A DNA stretch of 64,000 nucleotides from Podarcis liolepis (Eukaryota), in NCBI GenBank assembly GCA_965112155.1, contig OZ218115.1; one strand, written 5' to 3'. The translations under genes and the position numbers were made by a program. Positions 11,101 through 55,872 of the stretch are shown piece after piece. The notes under the pieces are model-generated. The model was not told the origin of the DNA and did not search any database. It saw only the letters and a program-made list of their open reading frames with translations. The number at the start of each line of letters is the position of its first letter. Within the stretch, counting starts at the first letter, position 1.

Positions 11101-14100
11101 AAGTCAAGGGCTCTGGAATCTCTTCCACCAGACATGCAAATGCTGAACAGAGTATAGAGTTCTCCGCAGACAAAATTTAACTGAGTGGTCCAAGATAGCA
11201 GGGATTCAAGTCCAAAATGCACCCTGGCATTCTTTGTCTATGTGTAAACAGAGACTTCTGCCTCAGGGGATAATAATAACCCTGTGACAACCTTTGAAGC
11301 AATCTCTGAATGTGTAAGCAAGTCCCTTATCTTATTTTACTGCCACTGCTGTAATGGCTTTTTTACATGATCAGTTATCCTGTGACAACATCCCCTGAAA
11401 CAGACTCCAATTTGTTTACATGCTCATGAGGCTGACAGTCAGTAACCCCTGGCAAGATTGGGGCCCGTTGCCTCATCACATGTCCTGGAACAAAGCAGTT
11501 GTGTAAACCAGCAGTTTCAGCCTTCAAAAAGGCCCTCCCTGTGCACACACCTATCCTATAAGGTGGACAGATGGAAGGGAACACAGAGTTCCTCCTGCTG
11601 GGCCTTTAATAGATGTTCAGAAGAGGGAAATTTAGCAGGTATGACTTCCATCTTCCATTTTTTATAAAGGTGCAGGATCATTCTTCTCCTCTCTTCCATC
11701 TGGCCACCCTAGGTGATGGAGCCCTGAGGTCATGGAGCAGAGCAGGGGTAGCCAACATGGTGCCCTCCAGATACTGTTGGACTGCACCATCCCACAATCT
11801 CTGGCCATGCTGGCGGAGGGGGATGGCAGTTTGGAGCACATCGGCATCTGGAGGGCACCACATTGGCAATCCCTGGTGTAGAGACTGTATCATTTCAAAC
11901 TGTGTGTGTGTGTTGGGGGTGTGTGTCCTTTTTTCCATATTCCCTCCACTGGGGGGTGGAATCCTTCCCACCCTCTCACTTATCCCCTGCAGCACATCAG
12001 GGAGAAGAAGTGTGTCCCAGTCTGCTCCTGCCTCGATTAGTTTTCTATTTGTAGGGAATTTCTTAGAGGGGAGTCTTTGAAATTTTGGTGTGCCGCCCCC
12101 CACTGTGCTTGAAATCATTTACATTGGTACAAGTCATTTTCCCACTTCAGGATTTTGCTACCTTATTCTTACTTTGTACAAATTGGCCAGGCCTCAGATA
12201 GCTTGAAACAAATTCATGGATGATAGATTGATTTATCTGCAAAGATTTATAGACCGTCTAATCCTAAAACTCTGTAAATGGTGTACACAAGTGCTGTATC
12301 AGTGATTGTCCACTGTGATTGCTAAACAGAAGCTCCATGAAAGAGCCACACCAGTGGTACAAATCTCAGGTTCAGTCCCTGCAAATAGGGCTGGGAATGG
12401 CCCTGGAGAGACGCTTCCTGTCAGTGCAAACAATACTGACTGGTCAGACCTGGTATTGGGCAGCTTCCTATGTTTCTGTCCATCTGAATACCAGTTGTTG
12501 GTAAACAAAGGAGCAGGTTTTCCCCAAGATGGCCTGCTGTTCGGCTCCAGCTAGGCTTCCAGCCAGATTTTGTGGCAGAATTTCCTTGCCATTTTTTTAT
12601 CTCAGCACTTGGCTCTTGGTCCTTACTAGATTTTAGGCCTGGTTTGGTACCAGAATAGAAAAACGGGTACCTTTAAATGGCCCAAAGTGTTCAGGGAGGA
12701 GGTGTGGCAGGACAAAATATTTAATTCCTTAGGTGGGTAAACTCATATTGAGTAAGCAAGTGTCACTCCTGTTACAACAATCTTGAGGTTGCTTTTGCTG
12801 CCACAGACTTACAGGTAGGTAGTGCTAGAAACTCAGATATATGAGCCAACCGCCAAATGGCACGTTAATCAAAGGTTAGGGTTGCCACAATAGAATGTTT
12901 AGGCGCCAACTTTTTTTACAATGAAATTTATTATTATTATTATTACTATTCATTTTGTTTATATACACCTTTATATTTTAAAGAGAAAAATATCAAGGTG
13001 CTTTACAACAAATTAAAATATCAAATAAAGCAATCCAGAATAAAACAAATTTAAGCTTCAAGGAAGATATTTCAGATCCTTCTCTAAGAGACATTTTGCT
13101 TTCCCCATATTTATTTGCCTACCTAATTTATATAGCTGCCCCATAGCAGAAATACCCTAGGAAGCCAGTTTAGATTAGTGGTTAGAGTGTCAGACCAGGA
13201 CCTGGGAGATCAGGGTTCAAATCCCCACTCAGTCATGAAGCTCCCTGGGTGACCTTGGGACAAATCACAGCCTCTGAACCTTCCTCACAGGGTCGTTGTA
13301 GGGATTAACCAAGGTGGGGGTGAACCATGTACTCCTTGGAGAAAAAGGTCAGATATAAATGCAATAAATATTCTCTTCCGCTTACCTGCTTAAGAAAGCT
13401 GGAGAGGCCAGTCAGGTGGAGATGTCAGATCTCCACATGGTCACAGTTGGACCTCTGCCAGTAGCAAAACACACCTGGTGCCTGGGGGATTTCTGACACC
13501 GCTTACAGGGCTATCCCTCTGGAACCCCTGAGGTTAGAGTTGACAGAGGAACTTTACCAGAAGAGAAGTTGGCAGTCCTAGACATGAGTAGTAGGTGTGT
13601 CATATTTTCTGGAAGCACCCTGTGCCCTTAACAGCTGCATGGTAGACAACAAGTATTCAAGTTTAAATCTGGCCATTGTCTGGCATGAGAAGAGTGTGGC
13701 TTGGATCACTGAATGAGACATTCAGTAGGCAAACAAAATAGTTGTCGTTGTTTTAAGTATAGGATTTGGAGTGTGCAATTTGTATCACAGGGAATAGAGG
13801 TACGTTGATGGAGTTCTAATTGAACCCTTTCCCTGCAAGATTTTTATGTGCAATAAATGGTGTTTATTTATTTTGCCCAAAAAAGTATTCACTCAGATGA
13901 GTCCCCAGCTGTGGTCGTAAGTGGTTGTGGTATCTCACACAGATTTTCCATTTCAGTGAGAACTAGGCTTACCTCAGAGGGTTGTGGTATCAGGACAAAA
14001 TGAAATAGTTTTCTATAACCTGCACTGAGCTTCTCTGTGGAAGAGTTGACAGAGAAATATGTGACTTAAGATCAGTGCACCTGTCTTTTTTATAATAATA

Positions 14101-17100
14101 TTTATTAGAGTTTCGAATAATACAAAAAACAAAAAGAAAAAAATGAAAAAAATTCATCCTTGACAATCCCATTTTCAATAACTTTTTTCCGCGACTTCCC
14201 CTCACCTCCCCTTCTTGTATTCCAAGTCCAAATATTTATCCCACAAGTTCTTATCTCTAATTTTTTAACCTTAATTTGTTATTATATTTATTTATATTAA
14301 ATTTTTAACCTTAATTCATTATTGTATTTAGTTCAATTTATATATCAACTTTTAACTTATATACCTCAATCATTTATAAAAAACTTTTTCTAAGGTTGAC
14401 CCTATTTCCCTTCCACAAATTCCCCATTCTTATACTAATAGCAACACAGAATTAAACACAGAATAGAAAAAAATCAAGCCCCCTTCGGATTTCCAAACCC
14501 CACCCTCCCTTCCCTGGTTTCAATCCCAAAACCATAGTCCATTAGTTTATCTATTATCAGCCTGGCAACCTCACGTCCGAGGCCCTTAAATCTCTCTGTC
14601 CCTTTCTGCCGGCTTCTTTGAAAGTCCCTTGTATTTAACACCCAGTCTCGGAGGGGCACTCTCTCTATAATATCCATGTTCCTTCCAGCCAGGCCTCCTT
14701 GTTTAAAGGTGGAGCTCAAATCCTGTTTCTTAAATCCAAATGTCCCAAGAGCTCCAGCTTCCACCTTGATCAAATTACCGTATTTTTCGCTCTATAACAC
14801 GCACCTGACCATAACACGCACATCGTTTTTAGAGGAGGAAAACAAGGGAAAAAATATTCTGAATGAAACAGTGGACGTATCATTTTTGTGCTTCATGCTG
14901 TGGCCACAGACATGTGATCTGATGGTGAATTTGGGGTGACCCAATGCAGAAATCCTGAGAATCCCTGTGGATCCATGCTTTGTAACCACGTTTTTGCACC
15001 ATTGCAGCCCCAGGCAACAGTGGGTGCGTGATTTTTTTGGGGGGGGGGACAGGCTGTAGCCATGGACATGCTATGTGCTCTGATGGTGAATTTTGGCTGA
15101 CCCAATGCAAAGATCCTGAGGATCCATGTGGATCCATGCTTTGTAACCACGTTTTTGCACCATTGCAGCCCCAGGCAACAATGGGTGTGTGATTTTGGGG
15201 GGGCAGGCTGTAGCCATGGACATGCTGTGTGCTCTGATGGTGAATTTGGGGTGACCCAATGCAAAGATCCTGAGGATCCATGTGGATCCATGCTTTGTAA
15301 CCACATTTTAAGTGGGGAGGGAAGGAAAAACACAGAAGGCTAAGAATGCAGGAGAGGGCTATAACGTGAGGAAAGGAAGGCAAAAGTTTCCCCCCACCCA
15401 CCCACCCAAGCCAGCCAGCGTGCGCTCTCTCTCTCTCTCTCCCTCCCACCAGCATGACAGAAGAAAGCATTTTAACTGCATTAAGAACTATTTAGCAGCG
15501 AAACCTAAGCTTTGCCATCCCTTAAGAGGTACAGACACTGTAATCTTCCAGATCGCATGAATTTACAGGCAAAACACTGTTTAAGGATTTCATCCTTTTA
15601 AATGGAAGAAAGCATATTTGAATGCTGTGTGTCTCCAAAAACAAAAAGTAGGAAGTCAAATCAGAATTTTAAGCCGAACCTGTAATCTCTCTTCCCTTTA
15701 CAAACATTGTTCCCTCCGGAGCAGGGACAGGATAGAGCGACGCTCTGCTCTCCTCTCTACTTGCCTGGAGGGGAGGGGCTTTCCCTGCTCTTTGTTCGGA
15801 CGCTCTGCTTTCCTCTCTACTTGCCTGGAGGGGAGGGGCTTTCCCTGCTCTTTGTTCCGTTTGAGCAAACACAGTAACGAAACAGAGCAGGGTGGGCAGT
15901 AAGACCCTGAGGCAGAATGAAGGAAAACTGCCACTTCCTGTCTCACGGAGCTCCCTTCTCCCTGAAGCGCGGTTTGATTTTTGCCTCATTTTTCGGCTCC
16001 AGGGACCACACGTTCGCTCCATAACACGCACAGACATTTCCCCTTCCTTTTTAGGAGCAAAAATCTGCGTGTTATAGAGCGAAAAATACGGTAATAGTCC
16101 ATAGATCTTCAGATCCCCACAAAAGAAGATCTTTCCATTCCTCATTTCTAAGTTCAAACCAAGTTTTCCTCTTCCGATCCTTATTTTCTTTTATATCCAT
16201 CTTGACAGGCCTCCGGCTCTCATTTGCCTTCTGTAACATTGCAGCCCCTCCTTTCTGCTCCTCCTGTTCAGCGTATATCTCTTCCTCCTCTTCCTCAATT
16301 TTCTCTAGTTTCTTTTCTTGTCCAGCTGCCTGGGTTTTGTACGTCAAGTCCTTTTCCAGCTCAGTAGATACATTTGCTGTTGACTTCAAATTTGTAGCAC
16401 TTGTAGACAAAACATGACCTTGCTCGTACATCTTTCGCAACTTTCCCATGAGAAAAACAACCTCATCCAAGTCAGCCAGTATTTTCCGACCTATTTCCAT
16501 TCTTGTAATGTCCCTGAACCCCCTCTAGAGGGATTCTGGTTATTTAGTATTCCTTTCACTTCCAATCCAAAAGTCAAGTTAATTTGTTTCAGTCCTTCTT
16601 TATTTTCAACAACTTGTAACAATATATCCGGCTAAACCAAAGCTTTCTATTTTTTCCGGCTTTGACAGCTAATTTGACAGCTGTCAAAATCTTCTGTATC
16701 TCCTCAACAGGCTCTTCTCACGGATCACTCCCGGTCCCGGGAAGGGTGGCACTTGATCAGAAAATAAGCTCTTATCCTCCAGCACAGTAACTTATACTTT
16801 TAAATCCGTGGAATTAATAACTTTTATCCAAAAAAGAAAAAAAGACTCTTCTCTCGACCTTAGCTGTCAAATCCTTGCTTTAAAATGTTTACAATGGGGG
16901 GGAGATGGACTTCCTCTTTGCACCTCCCCCGCTCGTGCCGAATCCACAAAAAAGGAAAATTTTTAATCCAGTTTCCAAATTACTCACGGGTTGTTCTTGG
17001 TTTTTAGTCCAAATTTTCAAAGGAAGAAGTCAGCGCTCTCCGACGAATGGCATGCGGCTTCGCTCGGCAGGGGAAGCAGTAGACTCACAGCACCGCGCCG

Positions 17101-17992
17101 CTCCCCGTCCCCCGTTCCGTAACCTTTAAAAAGGCTCCTTCACGGGTCGGGAGGGCGCTAACGGTGCCCGCCTAGTCACCAGGTCTACGGGCATCCGCGC
17201 CCGTGGTTTTTGAGGGTCCCGCGTCGCCGGCGTGGCAGAACCCGACCCCTGTCGAGCCGACTCCCTCCGGAGCTCGGAGGGAATCCGCCATTCGGCGATG
17301 GCGCCAACCCGGAAGTCCAAGATCAGTGCACCTGTCAACTAGGATGCCACTGATTCATAATATCCCTGGGGTGCCCTTGTTTTTGGTGGTTCTCTCCAGA
17401 ATGATTGGAAACTCCCAATAAGGAGTTCATTCATTTCGTGTGTGTCTTTGCTGGTAATCAGTCCTTATGCCAGCAGTCAGCCAGGTTGGCCACTGGCTCT
17501 CATCCCTGGTGGCTGTCCACCATTTAAGTAACCCGAAATGTAATGCCTATAGATCTGTCGTCCAGGTAGGACTATACAGTACCTGCCCTGACTGGTAGTG
17601 GACATTCCAGTACTATGCCAAGGGTCCCTCAAAGTCTGGTACTAGCCCTGATAGTAATTATGCATAGGAAACAAAATCCTGATAGACAACCAAAGTATAT
17701 TATATGTGAATGAGAGGTCACTGGTCACCACTGGCTTCAAGTTACAAGAAAGGAGATTCCGACTAAACACCAGCAGTTTGGCAGTGAAGAAGACTCCCTC
17801 AGGAGGGTGTGGACTCTCCTCCATTGGAGGTTTTAAAGCAGAGGTTGGGTGGCCTTCTGTCAGGGATACTTTGGTTGAGATTCCTGCATTGCAGGGGGTT
17901 GGACTAGATGACCCTCAGGGTCCCTTCCAGCTCCATGATTCTATGAAATGGGTGTGTGTGTCTCAAACTGCATGATCTACCTCTCCCTCTCC

Positions 17993-18077
<85 letters not shown>

Positions 18078-21000
18078 CAAGCACCCCTGGTGCACTGCAC
18101 TACTTTGTAACGCTCAGTTTGAGAACTGACATTGTATTGTAGAATAATAAGGAGTTATAAAGGCCACAAGGCATTTCTCTTTTATCCTTATATTTAAAAC
18201 AATTAAAGTACTTGTTGCTAGAATCTCTTTATCACAGCATGTTTGCAGTAAGCCCCTTGACATTCTACTTGTTTTATCCCACTAGCTGAATGGCTGCACC
18301 ACCAATAATTTGCCATGTTGAAAGGTGGCAACGCTATTGTCAGCTGGGAGAAGGGAACTCATGTTTGTGCCAGTCTTACCATTAGAATGAAGCAGGTGCC
18401 CCAGGCAACAGAAGTTTGGGTATATATGCAGGGCAGCAATATCAGGTGGACCTGCCATTCTCTTCTGTCGGAGGATGGAGCTGTGTGAGAGCGCCAGCCA
18501 CGTAGCCTGTCCTTCGCCCCCTCAGTTATATGCGGCAGAGGATGCCCTCCTGTTTCCACTTTTGAAGCAGGTTTCCACCGTTGGCTTCTGTGGATTGAAT
18601 GGAGATGTGCTCCCTGGTCTTCAAGCAGCAAAATGTCTTGGGCAAACCTGGTCTGCATGAGTGTGAAAGATTGAAACTGCTTAGGAGGACGAGGAGAATC
18701 AGCTCTAAGCAAGCATTGCCAGGATGGGATGTGGGGAGATGTGGAGGTCTTCCCTGCAGGAGGGATTGTTTGTTACAGTGTGGTCAGCTGTGGAGGAGTG
18801 AGCTGCAGGTTACACATGGCAGATAGGATGGTGCAGGTACTTTTTGAATGCTCAGATTTCTTGAAGAAAAGGCAGCGAGCCAAAACCTTGAGCAGATGCA
18901 GAACCCAACATGAGTGCATCTCTTACGCATCCCTCAGGAAGGAAGGGAACCACTCCAGGAGTAATGTTATCTGAGGGGGCGGGTTGGAGTTCTCAGTGGA
19001 CTGGTGAAAAGAAGCACCAGACTTTGGACCTACAAGGCTCTATTGATTGGTCTGTCTGTCTGTCTGTCTGTCTGTTTCCTCCTTTCCTCTATAGGTCAAT
19101 GGTCGGGAGTTGTCCCGTCTCTCACAGGAGCAAACCCTTGAAGCCCTGCGGTGCTCCAAAGAGCCTCTGGTCATCCAGGTGTTGCGGCGCAGCCCCCGCA
19201 GCCGGGGTGGTGCCAGTGAAGGAGCTGCCCCCCAGGGGGACCCCACAACGTTGGTGGACAGTGGAACTCAGACAGACATCACCTTTGAACACCTACTGGG
19301 GCTAGGCAGGATGCACCCCCCGAGCCCCCCAGCTGTGACTTTGGAACCTTATGGGCTGCCTGATCTGTGAGTGCTCCCCCAAGCAAAACCTTCCCCATTG
19401 CATTTGCTCTCCATGCCCTTCAATCAGTTATAGCCCCATGGTCCCTTCCTACTACTCTGTTCTTTTAGAGTTGCCAGTTTTTAAACTAGTGTCTTTAGTT
19501 GTGTATTTTTAAGCAGCTCAATATGCAGACCTTAGCAGCACTGAGATAAACTCAGCTCTGTCCTCTCCTCCATGTTTTTCAACATCTACATGAAGCTGCT
19601 GGAAGAGATCATCAGGGGGTTTGGGCCACGTGTTCACCAGTATGTGGATGACACCCAGCTCTACCTAACTTTTAAATTGGAACCAGTGAAAGCAGCGGAT
19701 GTCCTGTATGAGTGTCTGGAGGCAGTTGAACGATGGATGGTGGCTAACAGATTGAGGTTGAATCCTGACAAACAGAAGTACTGTTTTTGGGGGACTGGGG
19801 GTGGGCAGGTGTGGAGGACTCCCTGGTCCTGAATGGGGTAACTGTGCCCCTGAAAGACGAGGTGTGCAGCCTGGGAGTCATTTTGGACTCACAGCTGTCC
19901 ATGGAGGCGCAGGTTCATTCTGTGTCCAGGGCAGCTACTTACCAGCTCCATCTGGTACACAGGCTGAGACCCTACCTGCCCACAGACTGTCTTGACAGAG
20001 TGGTACATGCCCTGGTTCTTCCCCACTTGGACTACAGCAATACGTTCTACATGGGGCTACCTTTGAAGGTGACTCAGAAACTGCAATGCAGAATGCAGCA
20101 GCAAGACTGGTGACTGGAAGTGGCCACCGGGACCATATAACACTAGTCCTAAAGGATCTTCACTGGCTCCCAGTACGTTACCGAGCACAATTCAAAGTGT
20201 TGGTGCTGACCTTTAAAGCCCTAAGTGGCCTTGGCCCTGTATACCTGAAGGAGCATCTCCACCCCCATAGCTCAGCCTGGACACTGAAGTCCTCCTCCGA
20301 GGGTCTTCTGCTAGTTCCCTCACTGCAAGAAGTGAAGTTACAGCAAACCAGTCATAAGGCCTTCTTAAGAGTGGTGCCCTCCCTGTGGAACGCCCTGCCT
20401 TCAGATGTCAAAGAGATACATAACTTTTAGAAGACATCTGAAGGTAGCCCTGTATTGGGAAGTTTTTAATGTTTGATATTTTACTATGTTTTATATATGC
20501 TGTAAGCAGCCTAGAGTGCCTGGGAAAACCCAGCCAGATGGTGGCGTATTAACAACAACAACAACAACACCTGAACGCCTATAAATGTCTTCACAAGAGC
20601 AGGCCAGTCCATTTTCCTTATCAGCTGGCAACCCTGTTCACTCTCATATGATGAGCCCATTTTCCCAGCATCCGGGCTGTGGAGCCGTCACAGCTGCTCT
20701 TGGCTTCTTGAGTTCACTTTTCCTATATTATGCCGCCTGGCTAAAAAGCACATGCATGTACAAATGAAATTCCCTCACCCCTGAGTTAACCACAGCCACC
20801 AAACCTCATGTTTCAAGGTCCCAGGATCAAGTTTTCACATTAGTTTGCATGTGCTGAATGTTCATGTGCAGACATTGCTCTGGGAGTTTTCTAAGGGTAA
20901 CGGTGGTCCTGAGTGGCAAATGGATGCTTCACCTAACTGCTTTATGCCTTTCCTTCTTCACAGCCCCTCAATTGGGCATGAATATTATGACCCTGTGGAA

Positions 21001-22746: not shown

Positions 22747-25700
22747 AGGGAGGGAGGGAGATTTCTTTGGGATTGGGTTAAACCAAGGATGGGGAACCTT
22801 GCTCATCTCCTGTCTATTGGCCGTGCTGGCTGGAACTGATGGGAGTTGGAGTCTGGAGGGCCACAGGTTGAACTCTGTCTCTCCACCTGCTGCAGTCTGG
22901 GTGCTGCTCAGGGTCTCCGTGCATCAGCTTTACATTTCACCGTATTTTTTGCTCTATAAGACGCACCAGACCATAAGACGCACCTAGTTTTTGGAGGAGG
23001 AAAACAAGGGGAAAAAAATTCTGAATCCCAGAAGCCAGAACAGCAAGAGGGATCTGGTTTCTGGGATAACCTCTTGCTGTTCTGGCTTCTGGGATAGCTG
23101 CTCACAGCCTCTCCCGGGCAAAGAGCGTGCGGAGCGTGTGTGTGGCTCTTGGGGGCTTTTCCCTGAGGAGGGAAAAGGGCAGCCCTTCTCCCTCCTTGGG
23201 GAAAAGCCCCCAAGAGCCGCACTCTTTAAAGGGAGCAGTGAGCAGAGCCTCCCGTCTGCATTTGCTCCATAAGACACACACACACATTTCCCCTTACTTT
23301 TTAGGAGTGGAAAAGTGCGTTCATACAATTAGCATTGCCTCTACTTTGCCCCCAAAGTCAAGATTCCAGGAGCATGCTTTTGACTATAACCAGGAGTGCT
23401 ACCCTGACACCACATAGTATGATCTTAAATTACTACAAACCACTGGCCCTAGTAAGTGTGGTGTTAGCTGCATATGCCCAAGGAGCATTAGGGGCTGCTG
23501 TGTGAGGAGTATCCCAGAGGGCATCTTTGGTACTCTGGGCTCAAAGCACAGTTGGATTTATAGCTATTGTGAAAAGAGTTGGAGGCAGGGAAAGCAGAAT
23601 GCACCAAGTTATCACCACAGAAAGCCAGAGGTAGACTGTGCCATCTGGAGAACCCTGCCTAGCTGAAGATGTCAACTTAAGACATTTTCATCATCTGCTC
23701 CCTAAAACTACCAGCGCATCCTGGCAAGGAGCTCTTCAGTAATTAACGGAACTGTTTCTCCTATCTGTTGGCGCAATTGTGAATAATTTTTTTAGGCAGG
23801 CATGGAATTTGCAAGACACTTGACTCTAAATCGTTTAGGTATTGCATTTTTATTCTAGCACCCATCCATCCCTCTACCCTCTGTTTACCCTCACAACAAT
23901 CCTAGCTGGGGATTGGGGTGAGAGAGGGTATGACTGGCTCAAGACCACCCAATGAATTTCATGGAACACTGAGGGATTTGAATAAGTGTATCCTTGCTAT
24001 GCCTTTAGAAAAGAGCAAATTCTGGAGATCAACTAGCATTAGATGGAGAGTTATTTTCCATACTGTTCCAAATCCCATTCTGCATTGCCTAGTGCTGTGG
24101 TACGCACTCAGGAGAAACAGGCCTTATGCACGTACTTCTTCCAGGTCTTAGGATGTAAGAGAGCAGAGCAGAATCAGGTTCAAGCTTGTGTCTAAGGGAA
24201 GGGATTTTAGGTCTGGTGTGTGCTACAGTTATGAGGTTGGACAGGGGTCCTGGGTTCTCTGTTCAGCATTCAAAGATTAGTAGGTTCTTAGCAGGCTGGA
24301 AGAGAAACTAGGAAGTAGCATACTTAAGTTCACCTCCTGATGCTCATTTAATTTTTCTTACTCCAGGTAAATCCTAACAGCATTGCTGCCAAGGATGGGC
24401 GAATCCGGGAAGGAGATCGCATAATCCAGGTGAATCCTGTGGGCGACTGTGGTGGGTGTTAAGAGGGATAATTTAATGCACAAATTTAAACTTGCCCTTC
24501 TGTACATTTCCTCCAATCCTAGATAAATGGCATGGAGGTACAAAACCGGGAGGAGGCTGTAGCAATTCTCACCCAGGAGGAGCGGACAAATATTTCTCTG
24601 CTGCTGGCTAGGCCTGAGACTGAGGTGAGAGGTCTTTAGATGCATGACAAAGCAGAAGGTGAATGGAGAAGGGCCAAAGCGAAGTAGCAGAGCACAAGGC
24701 TTGCATGCAGAAGGCACCACGTTCAATCTCTGGCATGTTCAGGTAGGGCAAGGAGAGACTGGGGCAAGTTATCTGGGTCTGTGTAAGGCAGCCTCCTCTG
24801 GTCCCAGAGTCAGGATAGGGGGATAGGCTGCTGGATCAAACCTCAGCTGTTGAAACCTGTCACGTAAGAAAGAAACTTGCAGCTGTTTAATGTGTTTCAG
24901 GGAACAGGTGCATTTGAGTGTCTCTTTGCTTGCTTGTTATGGAGCTGCATGGAAGTAGGCTGTCTCCTGCCAATGTCCCTTGCAGTCCGGGGGTGGAGAG
25001 AAAGGCTCGAAGGGACTGGCGTATTTATTGTTTGCCTTGTCTGATGCTGAGAAGGAGTGTGAGCTGCTGGTGAGCCTTGCCTACTCTTATTTAGGGGTGC
25101 TTGTGAAATCCTCCCTATCTGAATTTCTCACTCTTGATTTTAAAATTATGAATAAGCTGCCCTTGTTTCCAGAGCAGCAGTGATGCATTAGCAACCCATT
25201 CTTCTTCTTTTAACACACACACGCTATATCTGGTCATATGCCTATATGTCCACAGTTGGCTGCAGTTTTAGTTGCTTTCTCCCTTTTACAACTGCACATT
25301 GGTTTTAAATCACAGCACAAAATTATCCTTGTGCAATCAAATCAGGATTCATTTTTGTACTGATTTATATTAATAGTGTACTTAGGTGCTGGTCCATGTT
25401 GGCAATTCTGTGGAGATATGCATTGAAAACTGTGGCAAACTGATCATGTGCCAATTCCAAACATAATTATCATTTTATAATTTTTAAAAAATTAAAGCAG
25501 AAAGCAAGTAGGCAGAGCCAGACTAAGGACAGAGGCAACCCAGGTAATAATATTGGAATATATATATTGGGAGTTGCTGCTCTCCTCTAGCAGGCAAAAG
25601 TGGATGCCTACAGAATAATCAAGCCATGTCTGATTTCAAACAGCCAGGTGCTTGGGCTGTCAGCCAGGACAGGGATGGATTGACATTTATGCAGCAGTGG

Positions 25701-28700: not shown

Positions 28701-29877
28701 CACCCCGGGAACCCTGCGCAAATTTGGGCCTAGCCTGCAGCCCCGCGACTTCCACTACAGCATGGACTCTCTGCTGGCAGGGGAGCCACCTAGCGCTGTG
28801 GGCACCGACATGATGCCAGGGCTTACTGACGAAGAGTATGAGCGCTACCGTGAGCTGCTGGAGCTAAAGTGCCACCTGGAGAACGGCAACGAGCCAGGCC
28901 TGGTGAGCGCTGCGCTGGACGTCAACCGCAACGAGGTGGCCCTCCTGGAGGAGGAGCTCCGCCACCTGGAGTTCAAGTGCCGCAACATCCTGCGAGCCCA
29001 GAAGATGCAGCAGCTGCGCGAGCGCTGCATGAAGGCCTGGCTGCTGGAGGAGGAAGGGCTCTACACCTTGGAAGGCGAACCGAAGAAACACGAGTTGTCC
29101 GACATCACCGAGCTGCCGGAGCGCTCCGATAAGGACAGCACCAGTGCCTACAACACCGGGGAGAGTTGCCGAAGCACCCCCTTGCTGGAGAGCCCCCTGC
29201 GCCGCCTGGCAGAGCCCCCCAACCTCAACCGGACTGCCCCACCTTCGCCGCCCCAGCCCAAATTCCGGCGTGAAGAGCGGGTGCGGCGCAGCCCCAAGGC
29301 AACCGGGGAAGGCAGCCCGTACTTGGGGCGGCGGCAGCGGGAGGAGCCGCCCGCTCCTATCAGCCCAATGAGCTTAGCCAGCATATGCAAGGACTCTCTA
29401 GGGGGCAAAGGAGAGCCCCGCATGGAGTGGAAAGTGAAGGTGCGCAGCGATGGCACGCGCTACGTGGCCAAGAGGCCGGTGAGGGACCGGCTGCTCAAAG
29501 CCAGGGCCATGAAGATCCGCGAGGAGCGCAGTGGCATGACGACGGACGATGACGCCGTCAGCGAGATGAAGATGGGGCGGTACTGGAGCAAGGAGGAGCG
29601 GAAGCAGCACCTGATCCGCGCCCGGGAGCAGCGGAAGCGCCGCGAGTTCATGATGCAGAGCCGGCTGGACTGCTTGAGGGAGCGCGAAGGCAGCGAAGCC
29701 CGGGGAGTGTCTGGTGAGGTCAACATCCTGGCCCTGAGTCACCGCAAAACCATGAAGAAACGGAGCCGGCGCATCCTGGACAACTGGATCACCATCCAGG
29801 AGATGCTGGCACATGGCACTCGCTCAGCAGATGGGCGCAGGGTTTACAACCCACTGCTGTCCGTCACCACGGTTTGA
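3335..29877 (+). CDS. PDZD4: PDZ domain-containing protein 4 (PDZRN4-like/LNX5), complete spliced CDS join(3335..3394,19095..19366,20964..21054,22449..22547,24367..24429,24523..24624,26884..26994,28543..29877), 710 aa
   Basis: All introns are GT-AG with consistent phases (2133 nt). The translation matches recalled human PDZD4 from MGCNMCVV(E)KPEEQY through the PDZ domain ([12 protein letters not shown]...[15 protein letters not shown]) to the C-terminus [10 protein letters not shown]. Confidence 0.96.
6922..7052. mobile_element. hAT MITE (131 bp)
   Basis: TIR CAGTGGCGTAGC; perfect 8-bp TSD GTCCTGGG. Confidence 0.9.
7633..7808. mobile_element. hAT MITE (176 bp) carrying a (GTT)n microsatellite
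   Basis: TIR CAGTGCTTTTTT / AAAAAGGCACTG; perfect 8-bp TSD GTTATAAC. Confidence 0.88.
8120..8161. repeat. (TAA)n microsatellite
   Basis: Direct inspection. Confidence 0.95.
13161..13370 (+). mobile_element. tRNA-derived SINE
   Basis: A box TAGTGGTTAGAG; B box GGTTCAAATCC; CORE/MIR-like body; AT-rich tail. Confidence 0.75.
14919..15304. repeat. ~155-160 bp tandem repeat (about 2.5 copies) inside the Tc2 element
   Basis: Unit starting CTGATGGTGAATTT... recurs at 14919, 15080 and 15234. Confidence 0.9.
15741..15857. repeat. 60-bp tandem duplication inside the Tc2 element
   Basis: CGCTCTGCT(C/T)TCCTCTCTACTTGCCTGGAGGGGAGGGGCTTTCCCTGCTCTTTGTTC occurs twice. Confidence 0.9.
17730..17946 (+). mobile_element. 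CR1 LINE 3' end
   Basis: GGTTGGACTAGATGACCCTC...CCCTTCCA...ATGATTCTATGA terminus. Confidence 0.85.
17981..18072. repeat. Compound (CT)n(GT)n(GA)n microsatellite
   Basis: Direct inspection. Confidence 0.95.
19095..19366 (+). CDS. PDZD4: PDZD4 coding exon 2 ([15 protein letters not shown]...EPYGLPD)
   Basis: Acceptor tag|GTC; donor CT|gtgagt. Confidence 0.93.
19553..20569 (+). mobile_element. L2-clade LINE 3' fragment (degenerate RT C-terminus)
   Basis: FNIYM...[37 protein letters not shown] across frameshifted frames; (AAC)n tail. Confidence 0.88.
20964..21054 (+). CDS. PDZD4: PDZD4 coding exon 3 ([13 protein letters not shown]...ELEYE)
   Basis: Acceptor cag|C; donor GAG|gtgaga; phase 2 to phase 0. 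Confidence 0.93.
22449..22547 (+). CDS. PDZD4: PDZD4 coding exon 4 (PDZ domain start, [19 protein letters not shown]...)
   Basis: Acceptor cag|GAG; donor GAG|gtgggg; 33 codons. Confidence 0.95.
22940..23320. mobile_element. Related Tc2-type non-autonomous element, right TIR truncated
   Basis: Left end CCGTATTTTTTGCTCTATAAGACGCAC and subterminal sequence homologous to 14778..; right end homologous to 16015-16070. Confidence 0.8.
24367..24429 (+). CDS. PDZD4: PDZD4 coding exon 5 ([21 protein letters not shown])
   Basis: Acceptor cag|GTA; donor CAG|gtgaat. Confidence 0.95.
24523..24624 (+). CDS. PDZD4: PDZD4 coding exon 6 ([16 protein letters not shown]...ARPETE)
   Basis: Acceptor tag|ATA; donor GAG|gtgaga; preceded by a 93-nt intron. 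Confidence 0.95.
26299..26329 (-). pseudogene. 3'-truncated (tailless) U5 snRNA retrocopy, nt 1-31
   Basis: ATACTCTGGTTTCTCTTCAGATCGTATAAAT on the minus strand; 11-bp TSD CTTCTCAATTT at 26292-26302 and 26332-26342. Confidence 0.88.
26884..26994 (+). CDS. PDZD4: PDZD4 coding exon 7 ([20 protein letters not shown]...PDQQ)
   Basis: Acceptor cag|TTG; donor CAG|gtgtgt. Confidence 0.92.
28543..29877 (+). CDS. PDZD4: PDZD4 terminal coding exon 8
   Basis: Acceptor tag|AAC, in frame with ORF 28762..29877; contains [28 protein letters not shown] and SVTTV*. Confidence 0.95.
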   Translation, partial: NEPLQEKPPGDPATPLTNSQELDSGVGRTDESTRNEESSEHDLLGDEAPSAANTPGTLRKFGPSLQPRDFHYSMDSLLAGEPPSAVGTDMMPGLTDEEYERYRELLELKCHLENGNEPGLVSAALDVNRNEVALLEEELRHLEFKCRNILRAQKMQQLRERCMKAWLLEEEGLYTLEGEPKKHELSDITELPERSDKDSTSAYNTGESCRSTPLLESPLRRLAEPPNLNRTAPPSPPQPKFRREERVRRSPKATGEGSPYLGRRQREEPPAPISPMSLASICKDSLGGKGEPRMEWKVKVRSDGTRYVAKRPVRDRLLKARAMKIREERSGMTTDDDAVSEMKMGRYWSKEERKQHLIRAREQRKRREFMMQSRLDCLREREGSEARGVSGEVNILALSHRKTMKKRSRRILDNWITIQEMLAHGTRSADGRRVYNPLLSVTTV

Positions 29878-52375: not shown

Positions 52376-52449
52376 GGGAACTTGGTGCTGAGCTCTTTGC
52401 TGCATGCTTGGTGGCAAGCCAGGAAACAGCAGGGTGCAAAGATGTGAAA

Positions 52450-53799
52450 ATAAAACCCCAAGGTGGTTGTCACCAATGGAGGCAAAGGCTCAGAAAAAGC
52501 TCAATATGGAGGCCAAGTGGCCGAAATATTGGGAAATTTTGGAGCAGGAAGGGGACAAATTGAAATTGCAGAGTTTTGAGAAATTAAAAGATAAAGTGCG
52601 AGACTGGCTTCACTATTACCAATTAAGAGAGACCTTTAATCTAGATAAAAAAAATGGCTTCCAGGTGGAAAAATCAAAGTTGGAAACAGAACTGTTAGAT
52701 CCTAAAACAAAGATACTTTCAAGAATGTATAACTTGCTGTTAAAATGGGACACTCAGGATGAGATGGTTAAATCTGCTATGATTAAATGGGCACAAGATG
52801 TTGGACATAACATTATGTTTGCTGACTGGGAACAGTTGTGGACCAAAGGTATAAAATTTACGGCATGTAATGCCCTAAGGGAAAATATTATGAAAATGAT
52901 CTATAGGTGGTACATGACCCCAGTCAAGCTTGCAAAAATCTATCATTTGCCCGAAAATAAATGTTGGAAATGTAAAGAGACTGAAGGTACATTCTTTCAC
53001 CTTTGGTGGACGTGCCCAAAGATTAAGGCTTTCTGGGAGATGATCTATAATGAAATGAAAAAGGTATTTAAATATACGTTCCTTAAGAAACCAGAGGCCT
53101 TTCTCTTGGGCATAGTCGGCCAATTGGTGCCAAAGAAGGACATAACTTTTTTTATGTATGCAACAACAGCAGCAAGAATACTCATCGCAAAGTATTGGAA
53201 GACACAAGATCTACCCACCCTGGAAGAATGGCAGATGAAGGTGATAGAGTACATGGAATTGGCAGAAATGACTGGTAGAATCCGAGACCAGGGAGAAGAG
53301 GCGGTGGAAGAAGAATGGAAAAAATTTAAAGCCTATCTACAGAAATACTGTAAAATTAATGAATGTTAAAGGGACGTTGGATTGAAAATAAGCGGTGTTG
53401 GTTAAAAGATTAATAAGTATATGTAAATATGGATTGACAATGGTGGAAAATATATATTTATTATAGGTTAAGATGTTGAATAAGGATAAATGATAGAGGG
53501 TAAGGATTTGCTGAACTAAATATCTGAACTGGAATACAAAAAGGGAGGTGTGAGGAGGTCAAGAAACTAGTGAATGAAGTATAAGACATGAAAATACTAT
53601 TTTTTTTTCTGTTTTGCTTTTTGGTGTTTTTTCTTCTTTTTCTTTTTCTATTCTGTTAACTGTTTTTTATTGTGTACTGTTATGTGTTTTGTATTTTTTC
53701 TTTTTTGGTAGCTTTTTTTTTGGTTTTTGTATTTTATGTTTAAATTTTGAAGCTTTTGATTGTTTATGAAATTTTAATAAATATTATTATAAAAAAAAA
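52450..53799 (+). mobile_element. 5'-truncated L1 LINE (ORF2 C-terminus and 3'UTR)
   Basis: Frame open to 53369 with Cys-rich motif CWKC...GTFFHLWWTCPKI; AATAAA and A tail; TSD CAAAGA(T/C)GTGAAA at 52437-52449 and 53800-53812. Confidence 0.9.
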
Positions 53800-55872
53800 C
53801 AAAGACGTGAAACCTGCCAGCTCATAGCTAGGCACACTGAAGTTTCCCCTGCAGGGTAGAGGCCTCTGTGCTGTGCACAGGTAGAGCCGCTGGCCATAAT
53901 GAACCACAGGCAGCTGCAGCCTCAGCACCTCCACCACCAGCCTGCTTATTAAACTGTCAGCTACTGAGTTCCCACAGTGGTGTGAGCTCAGATCACAGCC
54001 ATACTGTGCCTCTTTCCGCTGTAGCAGAATGAGATCGTTTAAAAATAGGTTTAGTGAGTACATCAAACCATATATTCGCACATGAAACCAGAATAGACAG
54101 AGCTTAACTCCCAGGGCTTTGGCAAAGTGCTTGAGATTGGCTGACTTGCAAATGAGTGGCCAGGAGCCTTAGCATTCATGTTCTGGGTAGCTGGGCAATC
54201 CTCCACAGCCACCAGTGCTTTGAGAAGGCGAAGCCACGTGGAGGGAGACAGTTTGCTCTGGAGGGAGCACATGCAAGGCGAGGATGAACTAAGTGCTACA
54301 TCCCAAGGGGTAGAAAACTGGGAGCAGAGTTTGAGGGATTGGACATCTTCTGCAGAAGCATCTCCTGCTTATGTCCTTGCACGCATATGTAAAAAGAAAG
54401 CAAATACTGCAAATACATTTCAGCAGTTCACTAAGTCCTGCACTGTTGGGTGTGTGTGTGGGGGGGGGTTTACTTCTCATCATATAGGGGTTGCCTCCCA
54501 GATGTTAGGACTCCCAATTGTCTCTGACTACTGGTTCTACTGTCAAGGGCTGATGGGATTCCAACAACATCTGGAGGGGGCCCCTGACTTGGAGGGAATG
54601 TAATTGGGGTTGCAAGCTAGCAGCGCTGAACTCTGTGCCAAGATAATCAAGTTATAGACCCCCCCTCCCCATCTCAATTATACAAATATGCAAGTTTTCT
54701 TACCTTGCATAATTTTCATTTTGCAACTTGGGGGAAAGTAATGACATTATAAGCAGTGAAGCCCCCACCCCCACATTCAGCTATGCGAAGGCTTCCGAGA
54801 TTTCAGCAACCTTTGCCCGCATATTATTAAGCGTTATCTTTGCAATCAAAGAAGACAGAAAGTTGCTTCCCCTCTCCTCAAAATGGAAAACCACCAAACT
54901 CTCTGCCAAACGCTACATTCCACATTATTTCCCCCACTTCCACAGAATTGCAGCATATACACAACCCTGCTATTAGGGGGACGCATATATGGTGAACGAG
55001 CACCGCTCCACCCTAGAGAGCCAGCATGGAATGTTGGTTGGTTGTAGGCCTCGCTTACAATTACAGCTGAGCAAGGGCACTTCTGGACTGAATCCCACCC
55101 CAAAATAGAGACAACCACACGCCAGTAAATTCTTATTGGGCAATCACAGTGGACTGGGAAGTTTTGCACAACAACCCCACTTCCTCAAACGACTGGCCTT
55201 TTTGCATTAAGGGATGTAATGGGAAAGTGCACTGGAAAGTGTGGGGCAGCACTTGCTTTGATGCAACAGCATTTAACTTCCCCAGAAACCAATTAGGACA
55301 AATGCTTAAAAATAAAAAAAATCAGGCCACCTGGAAGCACCCTAAGAGTAGAGAGACGAGCTAGTCATGCTTATTGTCAGGAAGAGAAAATGCACAGGCT
55401 TTTAAACAAAAATGACCAATTGTTATTTTTCCCCCTGTAGTCCTTTTCACTAGCAGGCACAGGTTTCTCTGTACCAAATATGACGCTTCTCCCTCCCCCA
55501 CCCCCCCAAAAAATCCACACTCATTTCCATTCTACTTCATACCCTCAGCCTCCCTGAGTGTTTCTGCCAAGCTGGCCTGCATCCTTGAACTCTGCCACTT
55601 GGATGCCTAGATGAAGAAGAGTGTTGGTAGAAAGCAGCCTCCCATACAAAGGGTGAAAATGTGTTTATTTCTCCACCCACCTTTGCCTGTTGTCCCACCC
55701 ACCACTTACAGGTAGCCCCTGGATAGTTGCACAGCTGGGATTGTGGCCCACAATCAATTATAATTCCCCCCCCCAACTGCCATGCAAGCTCAGTTAAGCA
55801 GAAACAACACTGCTGAACCCTGTCCTTTAAGCGTCCTGTCCTCGCATCAAGGGAACAGCCCTACAGGCTGCC

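Follow-up and report, generated by a model that had tools for sequence, protein, structure and literature searches.

The 64,000-nucleotide stretch of the Podarcis liolepis genome analyzed here (assembly GCA_965112155.1, contig OZ218115.1; hereafter the window) carries on its minus strand a retroposon that is interrupted by a nested DNA transposon. We consider it likely that this retroposon is a young copy of a multi-copy, approximately 1.9-kb family of non-autonomous, non-LTR (non-long terminal repeat) elements, copied in trans by an L1 and encoding a selected protein of its own of about 209 amino acids (aa). Its way of life is like that of the HAL1 elements of mammals, with a protein that is not recognizably L1 ORF1p. 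The copy is delimited by a target-site duplication (TSD) as follows.

14086..17318, minus strand: the complete copy of the retroposon, 3233 bp long, or 1917 bp once the nested insert and one TA are subtracted, bounded by the TSD and absent in organisms B and D
17319..17336, no strand: TSD next to the 5' end of the element, identical at 18 of 18 positions to 14068-14085
14068..14085, no strand: TSD next to the 3' (A-tail) end of the element, identical at 18 of 18 positions to 17319-17336

The first-pass annotation, a reading of the letters made before any database search, had proposed a minus-strand element within a perfect 18-bp TSD, and we found exactly this. The window contains exactly two instances of the 18-mer AAGATCAGTGCACCTGTC (14068-14085 and 17319-17336), and 100 shuffles gave zero matches. 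We compared positions 13086-18318 with the sequences, both reads and contigs, from four public runs, namely the DNA runs X1 (organism A), X2 (organism B) and X6 (organism D) and an RNA run of organism D. Contigs of organisms B and D contained the exact empty site, in which position 14067 is fused directly to 17319 with a single 18-mer. Positions 429-1113 of record 13 of organism B (1113 nt) correspond to 13382-14067 and its positions 1-428 to 17319-17754, and record 19 of organism D (1119 nt) has the same pairing. The flanks of these empty-site contigs are about 1% diverged from the window, and contigs of organism A have zero differences from the window flanks. Because two close relatives retain the exact empty site, the insertion is young; the integration with its 18-bp duplication took place while very close relatives were diverging, or later. 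At three positions left of the insertion site (13969-14019) in X1, about half of the depth carries the empty-site letters of organisms B and D, and the X1 individual may be heterozygous for the insertion.

The layout of the element is that of an mRNA, with a CpG-rich leader, one open reading frame (ORF) and a 3' untranslated region (UTR) with a polyadenylation signal.

17019..17318, minus strand: CpG-island-like 5' end, GC 61-72% and CpG observed/expected 0.97-1.17 in the first 300 nt
16501..17318, minus strand: leader (5' UTR), 818 nt, depleted in ATG by comparison with shuffles
14086..14356, minus strand: part of the 3' UTR homologous to an L1 3' UTR, with a colinear alignment, the shared end TAATAAATATTATTATAAAAAA, AATAAA and A6

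Both ends are as the annotation had described them, an L1-like CpG-rich start and an AATAAA/A-tail end. On the minus strand the element begins with GGACTTCCGGGTTGGCGCCATCGCCGAATGGCGG. Element positions 4, 17 and 28 mark the starts of CTTCCGG, GCCAT and ATGGCGG, respectively, which are candidate promoter cores of ETS-like and YY1-like type. The element finishes with ...CTCTAATAAATATTATTATAAAAAA; AATAAA occupies 14101-14106, and a short A6 tail follows at 14086-14091. The CpG-rich 5'-most part of the element (its first 400 nt, including 16936-17285) is 3-10 times deeper than the ORF in every DNA run. It is therefore common to other elements, and probably to other families, perhaps including the partner L1.

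With 1917 bp and no match to a reverse transcriptase or endonuclease, the element would have to be copied in trans. Neither half of the ORF matched Pfam models of reverse transcriptase, endonuclease or L1 ORF1p at E<=10, in agreement with the annotation, which had seen no endonuclease, no reverse transcriptase and no recognizable ORF1p RRM motif. A relative of the likely partner L1 lies in the same window.

52404..53799, plus strand: 5'-truncated L1 (the C-terminal 321 codons of ORF2p and the 3' UTR), identified by its ORF2p match

The ORF at 52404-53366 of this L1 aligns with residues 1048-1225 of human L1 ORF2p (E = 3e-12). Its 3' UTR and that of the element are colinear over 250 nt at 65% identity, with the terminal 29 nt at 93%, and the two share the terminal 22 nt, both finishing in TAATAAATATTATTATAAAAAA. 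The Smith-Waterman score of the 3' UTRs was 50, as compared with 20.1 +/- 2.6 (maximum 30) in 200 shuffles, about 11 standard deviations. The L1 at 52404-53799 is a relative and not necessarily the partner itself. Support for L1 dependence, which the annotation had put forward by calling the element a non-autonomous L1 parasite, comes from the TSD and the exact empty site, from the polyadenylation at the 3' end and from the 3'-UTR homology to a true L1. An L1 with such a 3' end would be the obvious source of the copying machinery. The truncated L1 (52450-53799; flanks 52437-53812) has a 13-bp duplication of its own, CAAAGA(T/C)GTGAAA, with one mismatch; like the TSD of the retroposon, it lacks the initial A-rich motif typical of mammalian L1 targets.

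The reads of the four runs indicate that the retroposon belongs to an abundant family. Single-copy flank bins had a summed depth of 12-67, whereas the bins of the element reached 1.3-41 thousand in X1 and X2 and 10-136 thousand in X6, so that the depth of the element is 10^2-10^3 times that of the flanks in the three DNA runs. As an order of magnitude, there are hundreds of copies or more at an identity of at least 80%. The annotation had allowed for a single-copy element; the depth and the presence of other copies uninterrupted at the site of the nested insert speak against it. The family is also represented among the RNA reads of organism D, which is without this insertion, and there one strand exceeds the other 5-20-fold. 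The mRNA-like layout, with its CpG-island 5' end, one ORF, AATAAA, A tail and TSD, is also what one would expect if L1 had copied a single-copy host gene once and so produced a retrogene or processed pseudogene. We regard such an origin as extremely unlikely, because the depth is hundreds-fold in three organisms, the 3' UTR is related to that of L1, and a HMMER scan of 1.84 billion representative proteins contained no host protein homologue; copy number and the L1-like UTR led us to reject it.

The depth of the post-ORF stretch at 14311-14485 matches that of the ORF. At an identity of at least 80%, therefore, what comes after the ORF is mostly this UTR rather than an ORF2. The annotation had also considered a simply internally deleted canonical L1. 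We found no remnant of ORF2 or ORF1p, the element having no resemblance to the ORF2 coding region of the window L1 by blastn, and the post-ORF stretch is as abundant as the ORF. A simple deleted L1 is ruled out by the lack of an ORF2 remnant. A related possibility is that the ORF represents ORF1 in autonomous L1 lineages of an unconventional kind, the window element being only a deletion-derivative subfamily of one of them. The relatives of the protein described below come from short contigs (0.9-1.9 kb), and the first 400 nt of the element exceed the ORF 3-10 times in abundance and are common to other elements, both of which would suit such lineages. The equal abundance of the post-ORF UTR and the ORF at an identity of at least 80% argues against them, and lizard L1 ORF1 proteins are, as far as is known, conventional. 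We therefore consider this explanation improbable.

The ORF of the present copy is split by the nested transposon and additionally altered near its 3' end.

16093..16500, minus strand: ORF part 1 (M...DLWTI; 136 codons), which contains the N-terminal helix and an E/K-rich, acidic stretch and aligns with relatives from the same start
14778..16091, no strand: nested non-autonomous DNA transposon, 1314 bp, with 26-nt perfect terminal inverted repeats and TA at 14776-77 and 16092-93
14591..14773, minus strand: ORF part 2 in the family frame, 61 codons (LIKVEAG...SRQKGTER), by alignment with relatives
14551..14592, minus strand: C-terminal end of the family followed by the stops TGA TAA TAG, in a frame other than that of the upstream ORF, by translation and comparison with relatives
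14474..14590, minus strand: out-of-frame extension of the ORF of this copy, 38 codons and a stop, found in no relative

The inverted repeats of the nested insert, perfect over 26 nt, extend to 30 nt when the flanks are counted, and internal tandem repeats of 161 bp and 60 bp are present. There is no transposase-sized ORF inside 14778-16091. The duplicated TA and the terminal inverted repeats are features of a Tc1/mariner-type non-autonomous transposon, and the name "Tc2" given to it in the annotation is a putative label. The nested-insert family is extremely abundant, with a summed depth of up to about 1.3 million in bins 14661-15360, as compared with about 40 for single-copy DNA. The perfect inverted repeats of the copy borne by the retroposon indicate that this family moved very recently, and this copy landed after the insertion of the retroposon. 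A second copy of the nested-insert family, older and truncated on the right, lies at 22940-23319.

Other copies of the retroposon are devoid of the nested insert. The joint 14776->16094 was found in contigs of X1, X2 and X6 and in four RNA reads. The X6 joint has one substituted letter at the junction, so the length and frame match the excision proposed by the annotation. That excision, of the insert together with one TA, indeed leaves 3233 - 1316 = 1917 bp, and the frame adds up as 136 codons from 16500..16093, the codon AAT (N) composed of 16092, 14775 and 14774, and 99 codons from 14773..14477, giving 236 codons. The annotation had deduced from this fusion a single ORF of 236 aa. The fusion itself is borne out by the coordinates and by the uninterrupted relatives, whereas the length is not, since the last 38 residues are out of the family frame. 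This copy shifts the frame right after ...KGTER and continues with 38 unrelated codons. The frameshift is private to this copy, and the family protein is therefore about 209 aa long, 236 being an inflated length. The copy is dead as a coding unit, with its ORF split by the transposon and its frame changed just before the conserved C-terminal end.

Further joints leave out 1419 nt, with 7 letters at the junction, or 1428 nt, with 13, and these correspond to in-frame losses of 96-99 nt. A subfamily with this in-frame loss (16094-16196; joints 14776->16196 and 14768->16197) is present in all three DNA runs. These deletion variants correspond to a short protein lineage, P0001, P0015 and P0016 (171-177 aa), which is basic with a pI of about 10, while the long protein forms are acidic with a pI of 4.5-6.4.

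We searched the two halves of the ORF separately for relatives. A word search found one relative, P0001 (171 aa, 54% identical), which covers both halves without interruption. A profile of P0001 and the two halves, run with HMMER against the 1.84 billion representatives, returned only seven proteins, and two further relatives came from another word search, this one based on the family profile. The family thus comprises nine diverged lineages, all open, of 154-215 aa and with 25-49% pairwise identity, from assembly contigs that are short (0.9-1.9 kb). All nine begin in a similar way, and eight of the nine end in ...(K/R)G(T/S/H)ER(D/E)LRASD(V/L)R(S/D/N)PG. Among the 13 best-supported differences between the ORF and other copies, nine were synonymous, as compared with an expected 20-27% (P ~2e-4 to 2e-3). 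The start codon lies in a good context, ACAAGAATGG, and the leader preceding it has only 3 ATGs in 818 nt, where shuffles gave 8.9 +/- 2.4. In the last 550 nt before the start there is no ATG at all, against 7.2 +/- 2.1 in shuffles (0 of 1000 shuffles were that low) and 5 on the antisense strand. The first upstream ATG, one of the three in the leader, is at 17291 (element position 28) inside ATGGCGG and opens a 39-codon frame.

The open, diverged lineages with the same boundaries, the synonymous excess and the ATG-free leader together suggest that the ORF is in use. Judged from these sequences, the protein of the element appears to be under purifying selection; nine lineages this diverged would hardly all be open with the same boundaries by chance. 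A chance or decaying frame without function could account for the frameshift and interruption of this copy, and the protein has no known domain and low structural confidence. Nine open lineages at 25-49% identity with a common start, and in eight of them a common end, together with the synonymous excess and the ATG-free leader, make that explanation very unlikely. The annotation had raised the possibility that the frame is closed in the family; it is open in all nine lineages.

The annotation had further inferred a protein of the element's own, possibly highly diverged or novel, and a nine-lineage family without a match to ORF1p agrees with this. Pfam yielded nothing beyond noise for the two halves and for 16 family members, and the three L1 ORF1p models (Transposase_22, trimer and dsRBD) had no match at E<=10 among these 16 sequences. 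A profile search of the PDB returned only coiled-coil noise (spike HR1, E 0.15) and no L1 ORF1p chain at E<=10. The hits of the HMMER scan of the 1.84 billion representatives included no ORF1p, and the ESM Atlas (all clusters and named clusters) had nothing usable for the family. Two AlphaFold runs with the family alignment reached a mean pLDDT (predicted local distance difference test) of 43 and 52, with a middle part of low confidence, a weak C-terminal helix and no beta-strands in either of these low-confidence models. The N-terminal third of the protein is acidic and the C-terminal third is basic. We picture the protein as starting with an amphipathic helix, continuing through a charged middle that is probably disordered, and closing with a basic part that bears the conserved C-terminal end. 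Such an outline would fit a small oligomerizing, RNA-associating protein.

The same outline leaves room for a true HAL1 analogue, derived from an L1 by loss of ORF2, whose strongly diverged and shortened ORF1 has kept the trimerizing coiled coil and has lost or degraded the RRM and the C-terminal domain. Coiled coils diverge fast, and one lineage reads EDLRIINLLKVE, which bears a faint resemblance to NLRIxGxPE, with which the RRM of ORF1p begins. Yet the R of "DLRII" is not conserved across the family, no beta-strands are predicted, 16 members have no match to Transposase_22, trimer or dsRBD at E<=10, and L1 ORF1p appeared neither in the PDB profile search (E<=10) nor in the HMMER scan. We take this origin seriously as a possibility without favoring it. 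Somewhat more doubtful is the bolder proposal that the ~209-aa protein represents a new RNA-packaging or ORF2p-recruiting kind unrelated to ORF1p and that it has enabled a family without reverse transcriptase to survive in several ancient lineages, each matched by its 3' UTR to an L1 lineage.

Several points weigh against our reading of the retroposon as an L1-copied family with a selected protein and limit how the numbers above are to be taken. Summed contig depth is not equivalent to copy number. The dominant RNA reads are antisense to the element if the library is of the usual dUTP type. The TSD begins with GACAGG after TT, unlike the A-rich mammalian L1 site. The comparison between the element and L1 spans the 3' UTR and the ORF2 coding region of the truncated L1. 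The diverged lineages were compared as proteins, and the layout without reverse transcriptase was read at the window family only. The 13 differences with their synonymous excess are a tool-selected sample, which is supportive and not decisive. With regard to the role of the protein, only the N-terminal helix is confidently predicted (residues 2-56 in P0003 and 2-35 in P0015, pLDDT 76-93).

We propose the following scenario for the L1-copied family. The CpG-rich leader would probably contain an internal promoter, from which the element RNA would be transcribed and then polyadenylated like an mRNA. The ORF2p of an L1, with its endonuclease and reverse transcriptase, would copy this RNA into new sites, presumably recruited by the L1-like 3' end. 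The protein of the element may act in cis on its own RNA as an ORF1p-like coat or assembly factor and thereby help it to compete for ORF2p. In this copy, a TA-targeting inverted-repeat transposon would later have landed in the ORF.

In the remainder of the compared region and the window, very high-copy short repeats, presumably squamate Sauria-SINE/Bov-B-like, occupy 17636-17985 and 13086-13435, with a depth that reaches 3 million at 17811-17985. Loose ends of these repeats include a tRNA-derived SINE-like (short interspersed element-like) head (...GGGTTCGAGCCCCACGTTGGGCAAA) and a tail of TTCTATGA repeats. At 28762-29877 on the plus strand, a 371-codon open frame resembles a large coding exon of a host gene, with no Pfam match at E<=0.01. 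The retroposon would be antisense to the host gene if the gene with this exon spans it.

Among known systems, the family resembles HAL1 most in its way of life. HAL1 elements are non-autonomous derivatives of L1 whose only product is ORF1p, and mammals have evolved them on several occasions (PMC5753468, citing Bao and Jurka 2010). HAL1 shares with the present family a non-autonomous, L1-mobilized and multi-copy nature, an L1-type mRNA layout with a single ORF that precedes the place ORF2 would occupy, TSDs and A tails. The hosts differ, mammals for HAL1 and a lizard here, and so does the ORF. Whereas the HAL1 ORF encodes a recognizable ORF1p, the ~209-aa protein has no ORF1p domain by Pfam, PDB profile or HMMER and no predicted RRM; ORF2 is absent here and the 3' UTR, the part that was compared, is L1-like. 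Our literature search found HAL1 in mammals only and returned no paper on such a reptile or lizard family.

Compared with the type II ORF1p of L1, the protein likewise has an N-terminal helical, probably oligomerizing segment followed by a charged region and is encoded first on its RNA, and by analogy a cis-acting role in coating that RNA is plausible. It differs in that the RRM and CTD were not found and that its length is at most about two thirds of that of ORF1p. The ORF1p of the zebrafish element ZfL2-1 is a precedent for a functional first-ORF protein of a long interspersed element (LINE) without recognizable domains: this protein has no known RNA-binding domains and yet is reported to bind nucleic acids and to act on them as a chaperone (Nakamura et al. 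2012, as cited in PMC5203782). ZfL2-1 belongs to an autonomous LINE of the L2 clade, and the two proteins are likened by description.

For SVA and SINE-type parasites of L1, too, mobilization relies on L1 ORF2p acting in trans, and their copies bear TSDs and A tails. They are non-coding, in contrast to the retroposon described here with its apparently selected protein-coding gene. To our knowledge, the known L1 parasites are either non-coding (SINEs and SVA) or carry a plain ORF1p (HAL1). If the bolder proposal of an unrelated protein is correct, the family would be a protein-coding hyperparasite of L1 that is still active in living lizards, and the first-ORF function of LINE-type elements could be provided by an unrelated small protein made of a helix and charged, probably disordered regions. 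The absence of the insertion at the same site in close relatives points to recent movement of the retroposon family as well as of its L1 partner and the nested transposon, and the lineage is useful for studying ongoing transposition in reptiles. With 1.9 kb, one gene and recent activity, the family would offer a compact system in which to study the requirements for the capture of ORF2p by a retroposon RNA.

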